The notes below the pieces were generated by a model. It worked only from the letters and a program-made list of their open reading frames with translations, did not search any database and was not told the DNA's origin. A DNA stretch of 64,000 bases from Ramazzottius varieornatus (Eukaryota; Animalia; Tardigrada): contig BDGG01000010.1 of the NCBI GenBank assembly GCA_001949185.1, positions 1,125,773-1,189,772 of the forward strand, read 5' to 3'. This document shows positions 2,387 to 12,236 of this stretch, one piece after another. Position 1 is the stretch's first letter. Each line of letters begins with the position of its first letter. Position numbers and translations under genes: made by a program.

Positions 2387-3167
2387 TAGTGATTATGTCT
2401 CCTCACATAAACAATCTCTGACTATGTTGTTGGATTCTCGAAAGATAATGATGATTTAGTAAAAGGTCTGAGTATTCCACATGGCAGGCAGACCTAGACG
2501 AGATCTCAGTGAGTCGGTGGCGCTAAGCATAGCCACTGAGCATCGAAGAAAGCCAAGAGTAATTTTGTGGCAGTGCTAGAACTGACAGTTTAGAGTAATG
2601 GCTGTTCGGTTCATTACCTACCACACACGGAAAACTTAATGAAGGCTTTGACAGTCTCGTCTTGGTTGTTGTCTGCGGGAAACAACCTTGATCACAAGTG
2701 CACTTCTGAACTTTCGAGATTTTGTCCGTACTAAATTCCACCAGTTTTTGTGGGCGTATCTCAAGACGGTTTCTTGTTTGTTCCAGGCCAACCAAAGTTT
2801 CACTTCCTTCAGCGGGAATCCATGGATCTCACAGGAAGCTTGCCTTTACGGTTCTTTGACCTTCGAGTTATCTTTTTAAATTTTGGATTTGCATGACGTT
2901 TCTCCACTGAAGAATAACGTGCCTTGACTTCTGAGTATCTCATACCAATTTCTTTTCTGACTTCCGGGTATGAAGAATCTCGTTCTGTATTTCAATTTAT
3001 TCCTTTGCAATCCGCGAGATGTTCGCTTGCCTCCTTCTCCCTTCATTCGACCCACGTTGGAAATAATAAACTTCCAGATCACTCACACAAGTTGCGGTAA
3101 TGTAACACATGACACTGCGAGATACTATGATATCTGTGGAGTAATTCATAAAAAGCAAGCATATTTC

Positions 3168-4370
3168 TCATCTCGATGGATCATTTGTGACAACTACACA
3201 GCATTTCTGGAAGAACCGACACTGTGTGGCCACGACCAAAACACCTCGTGTACAAGTAAGCGCAGCACTTGTCTCTGCCACGCATATACCTGTCTGACTG
3301 CCGCTGGCAGGTACTTGTGGGCTCTTGCAGGGTTGACCACCACGGATATTCGAGCTCGCCACGGCTGAAAAGTTCAAGGCCGGCGTTGTGGCTACCGTAC
3401 TATTAGTCGTCGTCTCTGTTGCAGCAGTCGTCTCATCCGCATCCGAGTCAGCGCTACCATCTACCCTCCCATTACCACTACCGCCTCCCAGCAACCCAGC
3501 CACACTTCCTTGAGCACCCAAGTTTCCTGTTCCACTGCCCCCATTTTGGCCCAGTCCTCCAGAGTTGGCATTCACTCCGCCGTTGGCTAGGGTGCCTGCT
3601 GCTCCCGAAGAGCCACCAGGGGCCGCTGCGTCCGTGCCGGTTCCACCACTTCCGGTCCCTGAGCCTCCTGTCTTGCCAGCGCCAGTAACTCCGCCAGCAG
3701 CCCCTGTTGTGTTGGTTGCGGCTGTAGTAGTCGCCGCTGCAGCGACTGTTGTCGTATCATGGTTGTAAAACATTTGCCACCTAGGAAGCAAAACCCAAAA
3801 TCAAGAACGGGACCTAACTTAAGCAAGTAAACTCGCCAAGACCATTTGTCCAAGTGGCGCACGGTTCAAGCCAACAACACTGAACACGTGCGCCACCAGA
3901 GAAAACAGTCTTGTGAAATTTGTACTAATCTTTGCTACGTAACGAGTGTCGTATCGATACAAGCATACGAGATGTGCAGAATCCCTTTTACCAAATCGAA
4001 AGTACCGATTGGGGCTGACCTGTAGTTGGAGAAGGCTAGATCCTGGTCCGCGCTTGCACTTTGCGCAAAGATTGGCGGATTTGGCATTACTGAAACAGAC
4101 CAAAAAATGGCTCTCGCGCACGTACTATACTGCTAAGTTACCAAATTATTTGGTACGGTAATATCCTCCCAACTCAGGGGCAGCACTCAGCCTGTTCGTG
4201 TCGAACTCACCGAGAGGTCCAAGATTAGAGCCGGACGTGTAGCGCTGTGGCACGGTGAGCCAAGGCAGCATCGGGAAGCTAGGATACTGACCGTCATACT
4301 GCTGACCCAGAGCTGTTCCTCCGAAGGACACCACAACGAAGATGACAGACAGCGCCAAACTAGCAGACAT
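3168..4370 (-). CDS. Secreted Gly/Thr/Ala-rich protein with C-terminal six-Cys (clip- or beta-defensin-like) module, ~284 aa; exons 4370-4157, 4019-3992, 3780-3168
   Basis: Signal peptide MSASLALSVIFVVVSFGGTALG; three exons join in frame through GT-AG introns; tail C-x14-C-x9-C-x10-C-x5-CC. Confidence 0.75.
3820..3925. repeat. Hairpin repeat family, copy 2 (intronic)
   Basis: GTGGCGCACG...CGTGCGCCAC perfect core stem with extended arms. Confidence 0.7.
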
Positions 4371-4674
4371 TTTTACCCCGAACACCAGACTGAAATTAGA
4401 AAACTGAAACCAACCCTAACTATTCAAAGCCGACAAAATCTCGAAACACGTCTCATCGACCTTCAACGACTCGAGAGCAAACCCCGAAATTAAAGCTACA
4501 CCGAATGTCAACCAGAGGAAAGATCTAGAGCGTCAAAAACATCTCCAAACGTACAATTAGCAAGCTAGACAACTCTAAGACCTTTTGAAGATCCGGCAGC
4601 GGGAAAGCCTGCGAACAAAAGCCAGTTTACTGAGAGCTGCGGACGAGCATTTCACTTTACAGAATTTTCAGCTT

Positions 4675-4740
4675 GCCTCAGAAAGACTAATCGTAAGTAA
4701 TCATCAATCTCATTTGTCCCTATCTGTTTTCATCATAACC
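4675..4740 (-). ncRNA. Box C/D snoRNA, double guide (D' guide SNORD53-like)
   Basis: C ATGATGA, D' ATGA, C' TTGATGA, D CTGA; D guide CGATTAGTCTTT antisense to LSU AAAGACUAAUCG; D' guide AGATAGGGACA antisense to LSU UGUCCCUAUCU. Confidence 0.9.
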
Positions 4741-4905
4741 GTCTCTTCAATGTGAATCAGTTTCAGACATTCAGACTTACCATGATGAGGTGAGAAACAC
4801 TCGACATTCCCGTCCAATCGTCCATCCGTCCCTGATCCTGCAAGAACACACAGAAATCAACAAAAGTTACCCCTAAATCCGCCGCAGAAAAAACGCTGAC
4901 CATTG

Positions 4906-4990
4906 AAGCCTCAGACAGCCAAAAGGAACGGTACAATTTTTAGATCAACACTGACAATTCAGTTGGCAGAATCTTTGTCATCATGTACAA
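4906..4990 (-). ncRNA. Box C/D snoRNA, double guide to the LSU ACAGCCAAGGGAACGGGCUUGGCAGAAUC region (snR190/SNORD12 target region)
   Basis: C ATGATGA; D' guide GATTCTGCCAA + CTGA; D guide CCGTTCCTTTTGGCTGT + CTGA. Confidence 0.9.
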
Positions 4991-5137
4991 GCAGCAGAAC
5001 TCGCGAACAACTAGCGCGTGAGGCTTACCGAACTTTTCGCTTCCACGTCCCACCGAGAAACTTTCCATTCCCTAAAAAACCAAAATCAAATTAGAGACTC
5101 TTCCTGAAAGACCCCCCCGTATCTTTGAAAGGCACAA

Positions 5138-5221
5138 CATGATAAAATCAGCCACGCGATATAGGAACATCAAAAGTACTCAGAATCGGTGTTGACATAA
5201 ATTATTCATCAAGCTATCATG
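5138..5221 (-). ncRNA. Box C/D snoRNA
   Basis: Terminal stem CATGATA/TATCATG; C TTGATGA, D' CTGA, C' TTGATGT, D CTGA; D' guide GTCAACAC antisense to LSU GUGUUGAC; D guide target not recognised. Confidence 0.85.
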
Positions 5222-5415
5222 CTTAGGGAAGAGCGCACGGCTTTAGGACGTGCGGAGAGCAAATCCCATCGAAAAGCGTGCTCACCTTCAAATCGAACAA
5301 CGAGGGTAGTATCACGCCTCCGCCAACATGCCGACTTCCCTCTAGACCTGAAGGAAAACACCCGTCATTAGAACGGAGCGACAGAAAAAGATGGACGAAA
5401 AGTTAGGTTTGGAAG

Positions 5416-5500
5416 GCTCATAGATCTGTAACTTTATTGAGTGTCTACATCCAAGTAACCGCGTCACTTGTCACGTTGGCAATATGATTAAATCATCGCA
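5416..5500 (-). ncRNA. Probable box C/D snoRNA
   Basis: C GCGATGA, D ATGA; guide AAGTTACAGATCT matches conserved LSU AGAUCCGUAACUU with one mismatch. Confidence 0.6.
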
Positions 5501-5661
5501 AAACTACAGCAAGAGGATTTCGGTCAAGCAAACGAAACTCACGCCGAGTCGAGCTCGCTGGTCAAGCTTCAAGATGTCGACTCTCGAACCTGCAAAGAAG
5601 ATTACACCGTGAATAGACAGCACCAACCGGACCGATTAAACGCTATTCGAAAGAGGTCCGA

Positions 5662-5733
5662 GTCATTAGTCAACTTGGTGGTTGATCTTTATCGTCATGT
5701 ACGCTCAAGAGTAGCAAATAAATAATCATTGAC
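5662..5733 (-). ncRNA. Box C/D snoRNA, SNORD76 (U76)-like
   Basis: Stem GTCA/TGAC; C ATGATTA; D' guide TATTTGCTACTC + TTGA antisense to LSU AGUAGCAAAUA, as recalled for U76; C' ATGACGA; residual AACCACCAAG; D variant CTAA. Confidence 0.85.
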
Positions 5734-5877
5734 AGTAGGAACAAAGGCGCCAGGCAGGTGGTCACCAATAAGAGGATACACTCACCTCGATGAAACCCCG
5801 TCCTGGAAAACCATCGGCAACAGCGAAGAAGACCTAAAACAACAAGACGTGTAACGCCACGTTATAGTGCTGGTTTC

Positions 5878-5963
5878 TCATCAGCCAGACAGCAATAAAG
5901 TCAGAGACCTAAGTACCAAAACGATTCACCCCAGAAGTCCCGTTTATATTTGTATCATCAGTG
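5878..5963 (-). ncRNA. Candidate orphan box C/D snoRNA
   Basis: C CTGATGA, two downstream CTGA boxes, short TCA/TGA stem, intronic position like its neighbours; no target recognised. Confidence 0.5.
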
Positions 5964-6713
5964 AACTAATTTCGAAAGACAAAACATCTATCAAAACCCA
6001 CCTTGTAAGCGAAGACCCGCAGTCACACGGGGATCACGGAGCATCGTCCGGATGTTGGAAACATACTTCGGCCTCAGCCTGCAACAACAAGAACCAGGTC
6101 AACTCAGACTTTCGCAACATTCCAAGATCCGACTCTGTCAATTCCTCTTGAAGTTGAAAGTACCAGTTAGCATTAGAACATCAGCTGAGAAATTCTTACT
6201 ATCGCCCCTCTGTAAATCCTTTCCAAAGGTAGACTTCGAAATGGCATGGAAAAGGTTGGCTATTGATCAACGAGACAATCAATCAAGTGAATCAACCATA
6301 CCTATCTGACAGTGTCTGCATTGAGAAGACTCATCTTCGCAGTGGAAATTTCCTGCCAATCGACCTTCTCCTAACCTGGAAAAAGATTTATTCATTACTA
6401 AGGAGTACTCAGGCCTGTAAGAACTCTCGAGAAACATAAGAGATTCGTTTCAGAGAGGGCAAGTGTGTCTTCAGGGTTGTCGGATTTTGTAAATGGTTTT
6501 CATCAGTCCATGCTCAAGCATTCTTTCAAATGTCTTATGGCATTCGCTACATACCTCTGGATCATCCCTGTAAATGTTCATTATGGCTTCGTTGAACGTC
6601 GAGCTGACCTGGAAAGAAAAAAACTGAGTAAGATAAGCAGCGACCTCGAAGAGCTACCCGGTATTCGGCAATACCGACATTATCCGGTAGGAAACTGACT
6701 GAGCTTTTCTCGG

Positions 6714-6797
6714 TTGCGAAACCATCAGAGATCTTGGTGGTAAAGTGTCCGCAATGATCTTCAGAGTCCAGATCTGCTTTATCATCATGTTTCGCAA
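6714..6797 (-). ncRNA. Box C/D snoRNA, SNORD24 (U24)-like
   Basis: 9-bp terminal stem TTGCGAAAC/GTTTCGCAA; C ATGATGA; D guide TACCACCAAGATCT + CTGA antisense to LSU AGAUCUUGGUGGUA. Confidence 0.92.
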
Positions 6798-7034
6798 TGA
6801 GTAAGGCCAAATGGAAGATGACGTCTGAAATTAGCTATGCTGACATCCAATGGTCTTACCTGGGCCAAAGCCTCCATCGACAGTGGATTCCAACGAGCTG
6901 CTCACCGCCCATCTTCCTTCTATTCCTCCCGAGATGATCCTAAAAGCAAACAAACGAGGTCGTAGAGCAGAATCCACGAAGGTAGAGAAATGAAACTGCG
7001 AAAACTTCCACAGCCGAAAACTTGTTTCTGCAAC

Positions 7035-7175
7035 TGCAAGCACTGAAGAGCTGCAGTACTTCGCCGACCAAAATTGATTGGCTTGAATGCTGCTGGGAGA
7101 ATCACGATTGATTGATCGTTCGACACTACAGTGAGTTTGTGCACGGCGAAGTACTGCTGCTCTTCAGTGACTGCA
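7035..7175. repeat. Inverted repeat / hairpin in the first intron of the snoRNA host
   Basis: CACTGAAGAGCTGCAGTACTTCGCCG pairs with CGGCGAAGTACTGCTGCTCTTCAGTG. Confidence 0.75.
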
Positions 7176-7321
7176 AGCAAGTGCAACTGTGCAAGGCAGG
7201 ATTGCGAAAGCAGCGAAACGCCGTCTCCGTTGTGGAACGAGTAGTGGGTGTGGTCGACCAGTATCGTATCCAGTCACGGCAGCCGCTTGGCCTCGGGTGA
7301 CCATCTAAATGATAGAGAGGG

Positions 7322-7515: not shown

Positions 7516-9610
7516 ATGGCAGCCATCAAGCCAGTACCTGCATCCGCTTCTAAGTGGCGGAAGAAGACGTCGCTGACTGCGCGCGTCCGACAACAGGTAA
7601 GCTAGGGCATGAGTTGAGCTCTAAGCTTAAGCTGATGACTCCCTTTTGCGTCGCATTAATCCCTTCATTGAATCATTGTGCCAAGCTCGATATATTCGGT
7701 ATCTAGCTGGAATTCTATTTCGGAGACGCCAACCTCGGCAAGGACCGTTTTCTACAGGAAAAGATACAGCAGAGCGAAGATGGATGTGAGTTTTGTTTTC
7801 GTCGTAATTATTACTCGTATAGATACACGCATCCATGCGATCTACTACAGTATCATGCATGTCCTCTTTCGCAGTTGTTCCGCTGGATATTCTGCTCACT
7901 TTCAACAAGCTTCGGGAGTTGACAACCGAAATACCCATCGTTCGGGAAGCTGTGCGGACGTCGCAGTTGTTACGGGTGCGTTGCATGTTCCCGCTTTTGC
8001 TTGCCTGGAGGCTGGAACTTAGTAACTCACTTGTCCGTGCATCAGATGATGTTTCCAACTACAGTATTCATTTAATGTTGCAGCTTTCGGAAGACGGCTT
8101 GAAGATCCAGCGTACAACTCCGTTAGAGGATCGCGGTCCTGTCGACGAAAGAACCCTCTATGTTGTAAGTTCGTTTGTATAATCAGGACTTACCGAAGTA
8201 CTATACTGTGTACTATTAATACATTCTTCGCAGGAAAACTTGCCACCGACTGCCGATATCGATTGGGTGACGAGTAGGTTTGCGGTGTTCGGTGACGTTG
8301 TTTATGTTAGTCTTCCGCGATTCAACACTCCGCCGAAGAACGCCATCAAAGGATTCGCCTTCGTTGAGTTTAAAGAGCCGGAAGGCGTCGAACAAGCTTG
8401 TCAGGTATACTTTCTTCAACTACAGTAAAAATAGAGCTGATAACGGATTAACGGTTCGAACTAACCTAGATTTTTGTCTGTTCCAGTACTTCACATCGCC
8501 CGATGGAGACGTGGCTGAAGCTTACGCCAAAGAAGCAGCTCTTCCTGTCGTACCTTCAATAACCGTGGCAGACTTTGACGAGGAAGACTTAGTTGGACCT
8601 CATGGCCACAAGAGGAAGCGAGACGAAGTCATGGAAGCCGACGCCCAAGATCCTACACCTGTTGCAACCGAACCAGCTTCGTCCAAATCGAAGACGGATG
8701 AAAGACCGCAAGTCTCGGAAGCCAAAGAGCCCAAAAGCGGAAAGTCAAAGTCCAAGAACAGATTCGCACCTGATCTCCTTCCATTAAGAGTCATGCCGAA
8801 GGTAAAATTAGCCACCTTAGAAGATTATGTCCGATGACTGGTGATAACACTGACGACGTAATGTTTACAGGTTAAATGGACCGAGCTGAAGAAACGCTAC
8901 CTCGACCTGCAGAAAGCCAGCTACAAAGCCTTGAAGCAAAAGCTGAAGCTACTCAACGTAGGAGACGCGCATTCGGACGCCATGGACGGTGATGAAGATG
9001 GAGTCTTGGTAAGTGACGATGAAGATAACCGAATGGACTTTCAAGAAAGCAAAGGCAAGAACTCCCGGAAGAAGAATGGCTGGACGAAGAAAGCCCAGCC
9101 TCAGAAAGACCAAGAAACGATGAAACCTCTGGAGTTTCCGAAAGGTTTGATAGTTCAACTAAAGTACGCAGTTGCAGTCACCGACAAGAAGCAGGTGATC
9201 AAAGACCTTCGAAGCATCCCCCATGTCGCCTTTGTGGATGTATCGAACGACACGGAAGTCTTTGTTCGGTGTGACGAGCAAGTTAACACGGCGGGAGTGA
9301 TGGAAAGTCTGTCACAGAAAGAAGCTACCGAATCGACGAGGCTGGTGGAAGGTGAGGAGGAGAGAACTTACTGGGAGAAGATCCAGAACGATATGAAGAA
9401 GCGCAGTGAAGCTGGCGGAAACCGACGTGGGAAGGCTAAGGTGAGCGCCGGCACCAGTGGCCAGACTGATGTAAGGACGCCTTTCTAACACGATACTGCA
9501 AACCTACAGAGAATTTACCTGTTTTTTGGTTGTTCATTTTCTAGCTAGTGAACCGTGCAGAAAGGATTGTGGAGCAGCAAGTCAAGAGCACGCACATCAA
9601 GTTCGAGTGA
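7516..9610 (+). CDS. LARP7: La-related protein 7 (La motif, RRM1, C-terminal xRRM), multi-exon
   Basis: RQQ|LEFYFGDANLGKDRFL La motif; ERTLYV|ENLP...KGFAFVEF RRM; WTELKKRYLDLQK; EEERTYWEKI; C-terminal HIKFE. Confidence 0.9.
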
Positions 9611-10751: not shown

Positions 10752-12236
10752 CAGTACCATTGCGGTCAGAAACGTGAGGACATGGAAAAATCAATCAATC
10801 AAAACCCAAGGCAGAGTTCGGGGCGGTATTACAATCAAAAGTTTTGATAAATTTTATTGAATGCACTCTCTGAATCACCACTTGGTTCGCAGACCATTAT
10901 TGAGAAGAAGATCCTCCAAACGCCTTTCCATCGTTCCGTACAACTTCTTACAGAGCTCAGGGGTTACTAATTTATCCCATGCTTCATACAACAACCTCTC
11001 TAAATCTGGCGTCGTATTCGGACACCTCTTTCCGATGTACTGCCACATGATATTCCAAACATTCTCGATGAGATTCATATCCGGAGATAACGGTGGCCAC
11101 GGGAGAACGGATAATCGACACTTTTTGAGATAGGCTTGGACTAGCTTGGCCTTGTGAGATGGTGCGTTATCGTGCATCCAAATGACTCGCTTCTTCTTCT
11201 TGCGACGTTCCCTGATCTTTGGTATTACTTCCTTGGCGAGCAGCACCGAGTAACTGAAGCGGTTGATGGATCCGTCAACGATGAAGAACGATAGTGGTCC
11301 GTCGCGAGTAATCGCGCCGTGGCACATCACGCTGAAGCGTCCAGGTGGAAGTTTTCTCTGGAAGTCTGCGTTGTAACGACTTTCACCAGGAAAACGCCTA
11401 ATCTGAACAAAGACCACGATCGATATTTGTTACAGTATCTTCCCAACGGTTTTGCGCATGAAATATAACGCCTGCACTTACTGTATGCCGCTCACAGTCA
11501 AACTTGGCACTGGCTTCATCGCTGAAGACAACGTAGTTCAGGCAGTTCTTGTCTTTTCTCAGCTTGTCCAGCATGTCCAGAGCCCAAATTACGCGCATGG
11601 TGCGATGGTGGTAAGTCAGAGGATTCTTCACGGGAGTGACAATCCTGGCCTGTAGCTGCTGTAGACGACGTCGCACGGTACGCTCACTGACCTTGCTTTC
11701 TTTTCCGGTAAGAGCTTGTTCACACTCCGCCGCGATCTTACCGGGTCTGCTCGCAGGCCAGTTCCGGGCTTTATGGTTGTGGGCAAGAAGTCGCAGGGTG
11801 TCTTCGAAATGGTCCGAAGTTTTCCGTTGGGTTCCTTTCTTCTTAGCAATGTCACCACTCAGACGTCGACGCCGCAGAAGATCAGATGCCCACTTTCGAG
11901 AATGCCCAAAGTAACGTCCAATTTGGCTCCAGCTGATGTCGTCTTTCCTCATTCTTCTGACTGCTCTCACCACCACGTCACTAACCCTGTGGCCTCGGCT
12001 CATTCTCGACTATATTACAAAACACAATGACAGAGGTAGAGATGGATATCACAGAAGAGATTACAGGAACTAAGAAGTAAGACTCCCGGCATCACAAAGG
12101 AACACCTGTTACGCCTGAAAACAGCTGACTGAACCGAAAACGTTGATCAAGGCTTTTGATTGCCGTGACGTCACGTCATGCGGTCGGTTCTGATAGATTT
12201 ATTGGCCATGTCCTCACGTTTCTGACCGCAATGGTA
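10752..12236 (-). mobile_element. Tc1 family DNA transposon (DD34E)
   Basis: TIR (CAG)TACCATTGCGGTCAGAAACGTGAGGACATGG at both ends; TA on the left; right end lacks the terminal CTG+TA. Confidence 0.93.
10875..12003 (-). CDS. Tc1 transposase, two exons (12003-11482, 11402-10875)
   Basis: HTH region, FSDE, HDNAPSH, SPDMNLIENVW with 34 residues between D and E; 79-nt GTAAGT...TTCAG intron joins the ORFs in frame. Confidence 0.9.

Follow-up and report, generated by a model that had tools for sequence, protein, structure and literature searches.

The locus and its exon-intron anatomy

The window analysed here comprises 64,000 nucleotides (nt) of the tardigrade Ramazzottius varieornatus (contig BDGG01000010.1, positions 1,125,773 to 1,189,772 of the forward strand; coordinates below count from the first letter of the window). 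On its minus strand, a previously unannotated stretch at 4371-6939 consists of ten short exons and nine GT-AG introns, and each intron carries a single unit resembling a small nucleolar RNA (snoRNA). Eight of these units are of the box C/D type (introns 1, 2 and 4-9), and that in intron 3 is H/ACA-like. We read the stretch as a probable multi-snoRNA host gene of the UHG/GAS5 type, flanked downstream by the coding gene RvY_14468 and upstream by a divergent gene for a predicted La-family protein. A preliminary description of this DNA had proposed about ten short minus-strand exons with canonical splice sites and one snoRNA per intron, and we recovered both the exon array and the one-to-one arrangement; its box C/D array also stands, although the number of C/D introns, given there as seven, is eight, with an H/ACA-like element in addition.

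Exon 1 (6860-6939, on the minus strand like every other feature of the array) is delimited by an acceptor-like site at 6940/6939 and a donor at 6860/6859, with an alternative donor at 6906/6905. There follow exon 2 (6555-6608, 54 nt), exon 3 (6302-6375, 74 nt), exon 4 (6002-6078, 77 nt), exon 5 (5786-5833, 48 nt), exon 6 (5543-5589, 47 nt), exon 7 (5286-5347, 62 nt), exon 8 (5029-5071, 43 nt) and exon 9 (4781-4837, 57 nt). Exon 10 (4371-4608) begins at an acceptor at 4609/4608, is closed in all three frames and abuts the ATG of RvY_14468 at 4370. The first nine exons are thus 43-80 nt long and exon 10 at least 238 nt, and the nine introns range from 168 to 251 nt. All nine introns have the full set of GT donor, pyrimidine tract and AG acceptor; their starts fit GT(A/G)(A/G/T)G, and they end in the tract followed by AG.

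The positions of the units within their introns are similarly regular. All of them start 40-73 nt past the 5' splice site, and the distance from the D box to the intron end is 67-76 nt in seven of the eight C/D units (116 nt in unit A, that of intron 1), while the H/ACA-like element lies 55 nt from the end of its intron. An optimum of ~70-80 nt before the 3' splice site was reportedly found by Hirose and Steitz in 2001. In PMC2780460, similar distances are given for intronic snoRNAs, and such distances are described as important for their processing. Of the indirect evidence, we regard the regular geometry of the array as speaking most strongly for genuine splice sites and for a release of the snoRNAs that depends on splicing.

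The same measurements bear on whether the units might instead form a polycistronic or independently transcribed cluster, processed by endonucleases as in plants or yeast, with GT...AG boundaries that are coincidental. Tight non-intronic clusters that include U24- and U74-type units are found in some metagenome eukaryotes (L057 and its relatives, described below), and there the units are about 100 nt apart, compared with 170-250 nt in the tardigrade array. This difference, the presence of donor, pyrimidine tract and AG in every one of the nine spacers, and the D-box-to-acceptor distance held at 67-76 nt in seven units together make a cluster of that kind improbable here.

Coding potential was assessed from the numbers of stops, open reading frames (ORFs) and ATGs in the joined exons (780 nt, up to the RvY_14468 ATG) and in shuffled sequences. 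Each frame contains 9-12 stops, the longest ORF starting with ATG is 65 amino acids long (shuffle mean 56, 95th percentile 99), and there are 16 ATGs, compared with 14.5 ± 3.5 in the shuffles. The joined exons therefore resemble random sequence, with neither a coding signal nor the depletion of ATGs that would be expected of a translated leader, and the claim that the spliced exons hold no continuous ORF is borne out.

Box C/D units and their predicted rRNA targets

Guide targets were sought in the genome's own ribosomal RNA (rRNA), namely the 28S (L001:1501-5314, 3814 nt) and the 18S (L004:1501-3320, 1820 nt). Pairing had to end at a D or D' box, and the target was taken as the fifth paired base before the box, as is usual for box C/D guides, whose antisense elements measure 10-21 bp; sites were mapped by aligning pieces of the 28S to the Rfam large-subunit (LSU) model and by reference to published tables. 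About ten guides pair over 11-15 bp with the genome's own rRNA directly before a D or D' box, one of them with the small subunit (SSU) and nine with the LSU. The preliminary description had counted about five LSU guides; that guides are antisense to rRNA was upheld, and the count rose to about ten with at least 11 paired bases, including the one directed at the SSU. It had also named a failure to pair with the organism's own 28S as a ground for abandoning the idea, and the pairings of 11-15 bp to its own 28S and 18S argue for keeping it.

Such pairings are more frequent in the array than expected. Perfect rRNA-antisense 11-mers directly before CTGA occur six times in these 2.3 kb, compared with 2.2 expected in the whole 64-kb window on both strands (block shuffles). 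Six guide-like matches elsewhere in the window (11522, 12552, 16054, 18665, 37245 and 41740) were rejected, as they are without a C box.

Two of the units correspond to the neighbouring U24 and U24b/U76 sites. Unit A (6714-6797, intron 1), of the U24 type, has a C box at 6782-6788, a D' box at 6761-6764, a D box at 6725-6728 and a 9-bp terminal stem. Its D guide forms 14 Watson-Crick (WC) pairs and one G-U pair and is predicted to direct modification of LSU C1697, equivalent to yeast C1437, and its D' guide forms 12 WC pairs specifying LSU C3540. Unit E (5662-5733, intron 5), of the U24b/U76 type, has a D' guide with 11 WC pairs specifying LSU A1709, equivalent to yeast A1449 and the human U76 site. 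C1697 and A1709 are 12 nt apart, exactly as are yeast C1437 and A1449, the U24 and U24b/U76 sites (PMC2780460). Unit E aligns over its full length with U24b-type units of metagenome contigs at 55-65% identity and retains the D' guide, the D' box TTGA and the C' box, with degenerate terminal boxes (C box ATGATTA, D box CTAA). The G-to-A change in its D box strikes a residue of the kink-turn core, and for this reason unit E may be unstable. Intron 1, the longest of the nine, also contains an extra hairpin past unit A (6640-6690, minus strand) with an 8-bp GC-rich stem (z = -1.3).

The units of introns 8 and 9 are directed at a second group of closely spaced sites. Unit H (4907-4989, intron 8; C box 4978-4984, D' box 4959-4962, D box 4911-4914) is of the U47 type; its D' guide forms 11 WC pairs specifying LSU C2762, the U47 site, and its D guide forms nine WC and two G-U pairs specifying LSU C2744, 18 nt upstream of C2762 and like the chicken U53 site. 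Unit I (4676-4747, intron 9; C box 4730-4736, D' box ATGA 4710-4713, D box 4678-4681), of the U74/snR64 type, has a D' guide with 11 WC pairs for LSU C2716 (yeast C2337, human U74 site) and a D guide with 12 WC pairs for LSU A1153. C2716 is the site of snR64, snoR44 and U74 (PMC2780460; PMC3511168), and C2744 and C2762 lie 28 and 46 nt downstream of it, matching the chicken U74, U53 and U47 sites at 28S C3330, C3358 and C3376, respectively (PMC2653536). A1153 probably corresponds to Neurospora 26S-Am897, which is guided by CD39, because its distance to the U24 site agrees within about 1 nt.

The single SSU guide belongs to unit B (6445-6513, intron 2; C box 6500-6506, D box 6450-6453), which is SNORD103-like and faces SSU G554 over 14 positions with 12 WC pairs, one G-U pair and one mismatch; the 3' limit of this unit is uncertain, since a further CTGA lies at 6409-6412. 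Unit D (5897-5967, intron 4; C box CTGATGA 5955-5961, D box 5901-5904) has a D guide with 12 WC and two G-U pairs for LSU C3728, which falls within a variable region close to the 3' end. Both C3540 and C3728 lie in sequence unlike the eukaryotic consensus and on that basis would be lineage-specific sites. Unit F (5415-5503, intron 6), with a non-canonical C box (GCGATGA, 5493-5499) and the D box ATGA (5418-5421), has a D guide with 13 WC and two G-U pairs for LSU C2252. Unit G (5138-5221, intron 7) combines a C box (5206-5212), a D' box (5180-5183), the C' box TGATGT, a D box (5148-5151) and a 7-bp terminal stem; its D' guide faces LSU G2550 over 17 positions with 14 WC pairs, two G-U pairs and one mismatch, and no target in the genome's own rRNA was found for its D guide. 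To C2252 and G2550, both in the conserved core, no known guide could be matched. A tentative equivalence of C2252 with a U50 site was rejected as a misfit with the 15-nt spacing of the two U50 sites.

In units A, B, D, G, H and I, the C box (RUGAUGA) and the D box (CUGA) match the canonical sequence or differ from it at no more than one position; units E and F deviate. Terminal stems measure 9 bp in unit A, 7 bp in unit G and 4 bp in unit E, being weak or absent in units B, D, F, H and I. When the 55.8-Mb, 200-contig genome was searched with the U24, U24b, U74 and U47 guides, no further copy with a C box was found; the other genomic matches have no C box, look like chance or coding sequence, and were discarded. 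Unit E thus carries the sole C-box-associated guide for A1709 in the genome.

An Rfam search had been proposed as a check on the snoRNA assignments. With E-value reporting, it yielded full-length matches to SNORD24 for unit A (37.5 bits) and unit E (31.6 bits; gathering score 41 in both cases), to SNORD47 for unit H (31.5 bits; gathering score 50), to SNORD74 for unit I (22.9 bits; gathering score 41) and to SNORD103 for unit B (22.2 bits; gathering score 45), all of them sub-threshold. Because these alignments are full-length and the guide elements agree with the consensus, units A, E, H, I and B appear to be distant relatives by function, as distinct from certified members of the Rfam families.

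An H/ACA-like element in intron 3

Unit C (6134-6257, intron 3) begins with a 5' hairpin, whose pocket is followed at 15 nt by an H-box-like ATAGTA. Beyond this come a putative 3' hairpin and, 3 nt before homology with a paralogue ends, an ACA. This paralogue, an intact H/ACA-like copy that is 87% identical to unit C, lies 177 kb away on the same contig (L016:733-856, or C10:954132-954255), in an intron of an SNF2/SRCAP-like helicase gene. The pocket of its 5' hairpin forms 7+6 WC pairs with 5.8S rRNA around a UG (UUG of GUGAAUUGCAGGAC), a target that we take to resemble the yeast snR43 site at 5.8S pseudouridine-73, and an ANANNA motif (ATAATA) is located exactly 15 nt downstream of the pocket. 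H/ACA guides are typically bipartite, with 9-13 bp on the two sides of a target U that lies 14-16 nt from the H or ACA box. Between the window copy and the paralogue, the lower stem of the 5' hairpin contains two compensatory pairs.

Rfam returned no match for unit C or for its paralogue. The 3' hairpin of unit C was not recovered by free folding, and its folding is unremarkable. Intron 3 had also been considered as the site of a box C/D unit (CTGATGT ... CTGA at 6107); no rRNA target was found for such a unit, and that assignment was given up in favour of the H/ACA-like one. On balance, the pocket, the motif spacing and the compensatory pairs incline us somewhat towards regarding the family as H/ACA.

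The downstream boundary and RvY_14468

RvY_14468 (3168-4370, minus strand) has three exons, and its product of 280 amino acids matches 'hypothetical protein RvY_14468 [Ramazzottius varieornatus]' exactly. A signal-peptide-like start is followed by a low-complexity middle rich in Thr, Gly and Ala and by a C-terminal motif of six cysteines ending in CC, which is kept in a 57% identical protein (P0002) from an ENA contig. No Pfam match was found for it, and a scan of metagenomes for relatives found none.

How the array ends is closely tied to this gene. Exon 10 runs into the ATG at 4370, 238 nt past the last acceptor (4608), with no AATAAA-like hexamer in between, and the first canonical AATAAA lies after the RvY_14468 stop, near 3000. 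The ten exons might accordingly be the long, multi-intron 5' leader of RvY_14468, so that the host would formally be protein-coding, possibly with two start sites, one serving the snoRNAs and one translation; dual-initiation promoters of snoRNA hosts are described in PMC6954239. On the other hand, the 16 upstream ATGs, undepleted relative to shuffles, would largely block translation of a protein conserved enough to have a 57% identical relative, and the annotated protein starts at 4370, making an upstream exon unnecessary. We consider the leader a real contender, at somewhat less than even odds. The array had previously been called an unannotated host long non-coding RNA (lncRNA); the absence of a coding signal from its exons agrees with this, but the exons may instead form a 5' leader of RvY_14468.

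For the snoRNA host transcript itself, we give about equal weight to an end at an unrecognised site and to a read-through into RvY_14468, whose 3' end it would then share. Because the upstream ATGs are undepleted, we argue that the long form, reading into RvY_14468, would not be a translated mRNA. Run-on into RvY_14468, if true, would couple snoRNA production to the leader of a coding gene and would provide a testable case.

A probable snoRNA host gene

In the scheme that we infer, which covers transcription, splicing, snoRNA accumulation and the methylations, a polymerase II pre-RNA from the minus strand would be spliced at the nine GT-AG introns, and the excised introns would be debranched and then trimmed to the assembled small nucleolar ribonucleoprotein (snoRNP) core. 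Eight box C/D snoRNAs and one H/ACA-like RNA would be released in this way. The C/D snoRNAs would direct fibrillarin-type 2'-O-methylation at about ten rRNA positions: nine in the LSU, namely the U24, U24b/U76, U74 and U47 sites, a U53-like site and further sites without a family match, and one in the SSU, the U103-like site. The joined exons would serve as a vehicle without coding information.

Several observations weigh against this scheme. Units E and F have weak or non-canonical boxes (ATGATTA and CTAA in the former, GCGATGA and ATGA in the latter), and units B and D are without a clear terminal stem. In unit C the guide pocket is damaged, a one-base insertion leaving 6+2 pairs to the 5.8S site. 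None of the Rfam matches attains the gathering score of its family. At the gene's margins, the 238 nt of exon 10 between 4608 and the RvY_14468 ATG hold no AATAAA-like hexamer, and the region between 6940 and 7600 offers no good donor.

Some of these points could be taken as signs of decay, in part or as a whole, with the array reduced to pseudo-snoRNAs or chance motifs: the terminal boxes of unit E are mutated, unit C can no longer form most of the pairs with the 5.8S site matched by its paralogue, and every Rfam score is below threshold. Decay is nevertheless very improbable, given a guide enrichment far above chance, the fact that the array holds the sole C-box-associated genomic copies of four conserved guides, and the canonical boxes and perfect terminal stems (9 bp and 7 bp) of units A and G. 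Weighing these lines of evidence together, we assign a probability of about 0.8 to the reading that the minus strand at 4371-6939 is a UHG/GAS5-type, polymerase II snoRNA host transcription unit.

The upstream boundary and neighbouring elements

At the upstream edge of exon 1 there is an acceptor-like tract at 6940, and the 5' end could lie as far upstream as ~7321 or 7566. Tracts resembling terminal oligopyrimidine (TOP) motifs, which mark transcript starts in UHG/GAS5-type hosts, occur at 7321, 7566 and 7763. With no good donor upstream of exon 1, the outer limit of 7321 that had been claimed for the gene could not be established.

Just upstream of host exon 1, or inside it, is an element of ~130 nt (7039-7169) with perfect terminal inverted repeats of ~25 nt that forms a long hairpin (z = -8). 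It occurs in more than 20 genomic copies with 75-95% identity and looks like a miniature inverted-repeat transposable element (MITE).

The product of the divergent neighbour at 7835-9488 (plus strand) combines a La domain with an RRM and an RRM_3/xRRM-like domain and is accordingly predicted to be a La or LARP7-family protein; this gene and the snoRNA host may have a bidirectional promoter region in common. Farther away, at 10875-12003 (minus strand), two adjacent ORFs with DDE_3 and Tc3-type HTH transposase domains appear to represent a Tc1/mariner-like transposase, possibly split.

Linkage of U24- and U74-type units in metagenome contigs

Metagenome contigs were scanned for linkage with a pattern consisting of a C box and the U74 guide; it matched at 80 loci, which comprise 63 distinct U74-type units. 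Ten of these 63 have a U24 or U24b-type neighbour on their own strand, mostly within ~2 kb and in one case at 3.2 kb, and the linked units occur in two layouts.

In the first layout, the units form tight clusters with a dual-guide U24. At L057:730-1160, and likewise in L018, L047, L068, L083, L089 and L096, five C/D snoRNAs are placed ~100 nt apart: the dual-guide U24, two others, a U74/snR64-type unit, and one with a D guide to the U53-type site (tardigrade LSU C2744). The second layout is represented by four AT-rich contigs with long spacers, L053, L084, L090 and L091, for which the description 'animal-like' reflects spacing and composition only. The order in L084, L090 and L091 is U24b-type, U74 and SNORD79, followed in L091 by two SNORD14 copies; in L053 the U24b-type unit and U74 are accompanied by one SNORD14. 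In these four contigs, and also in L033, several snoRNAs share a strand and are widely spaced, coding exons are not evident, and the arrays look like a GAS5-like host in invertebrates. Linkage of the U47 guide was sought in the U74-bearing contigs as well; the eight near-matches were rejected, having no C or D' boxes.

The linkage between U24/U76 and U74 is thus recurrent and probably old, and this would make shared ancestry more likely than convergence alone for part of the GAS5 cargo. A bolder proposal is that the array is the tardigrade descendant of an ancient, pre-vertebrate linkage group of U24/U76-type, U74/U79-type and U47 units, with GAS5 as its human survivor, or else that the array also serves as the upstream leader for a secreted-protein gene; we hold this proposal tentatively and, on the present evidence, lean against it. 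Were the ancient linkage group true, GAS5-type hosts would be orthologous across animals and recognisable only by their intronic cargo, because their exons evolve freely.

Comparison with GAS5 and other snoRNA host genes

Host genes of the UHG/GAS5 type have been described in mammals, chicken, Drosophila and Neurospora (PMC2653536, PMC2780460), whereas C. elegans is stated to have yielded no non-coding hosts (PMC2653536). In the literature searched, no paper on tardigrade snoRNA genes or their host genes was found. We consider it a sound conclusion that the array is a previously undescribed multi-snoRNA host gene of this well-known kind, and, given how familiar the layout is from vertebrate GAS5, fruit flies and fungi, a good but ordinary find. 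With it, the R. varieornatus genome gains nine putative snoRNA genes and about ten predicted sites of rRNA modification, and the array contributes to the suggestion that Tardigrada use the UHG strategy, as do flies and vertebrates.

The Drosophila Uhg genes and the UHG-like clusters of Neurospora (PMC2780460) resemble the tardigrade array in being non-coding, multi-intron hosts outside the vertebrates, with one snoRNA per intron and similar splice-site distances. They differ from it in snoRNA composition and in having been verified by cDNA or RT-PCR; the tardigrade array is predicted from the sequence.

Vertebrate GAS5 was reportedly described by Smith and Steitz in 1998. Like the tardigrade array, it and the gas5-like host of chicken are made up of many exons below 100 nt, devote each intron to a single box C/D snoRNA and contain only short ORFs amid many stops. 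U24 and the U103-like unit of the array have their human counterparts in hosts other than GAS5. The array also differs from GAS5 in having one intron with an H/ACA-like element. A GAS5-like layout had been claimed for the array at the outset, and three of the ten GAS5 families are represented in it, namely U74 and U47, both residents of the gas5-like host of chicken (PMC2653536), and U76, by a unit of that type (PMC2655684). The order differs: the tardigrade series runs U24, U103-like, H/ACA-like, D, U76-type, F, G, U47 and U74, whereas in the chicken gas5-like host U74 occupies intron 1 and U47 intron 11 (PMC2653536). U75, U77, U44, U78, U80 and U81 were not recognised among the nine tardigrade units, although no individual search for them was made, and an exact-pattern search of the genome for a U79-type guide matched ribosomal DNA only. 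A study of Trichoplax non-coding RNAs considered the age of GAS5 virtually impossible to settle from host sequences (PMC2655684). The co-hosting of U74, U47 and U76-type units in the tardigrade, together with the linkage of U76-type, U74 and U79 units in the animal-like metagenome contigs, offers a concrete route to asking whether GAS5 predates vertebrates.

Two of the snoRNA lineages represented in the array can be followed further. U24 and U24b (U76) have become separate units in S. pombe, in Neurospora (CD50 and CD51) and in human (U24 and U76; PMC2780460), and the tardigrade units conform to this split in that unit A keeps the C1437-type guide and unit E keeps the A1449-type guide with a vestige of the other. 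The tardigrade differs in that both units lie in one host and in that unit A has gained a second guide, for the lineage-variable LSU C3540. Unit I, for its part, belongs by function with the snR64, snoR44 and U74-U79 clan (Rfam CL00069; PMC3511168), since its D' guide targets the homologous C; its D' box, ATGA, is the same as in the animal-like metagenome homologues, and it is set apart from the clan by its second guide, directed at LSU A1153.

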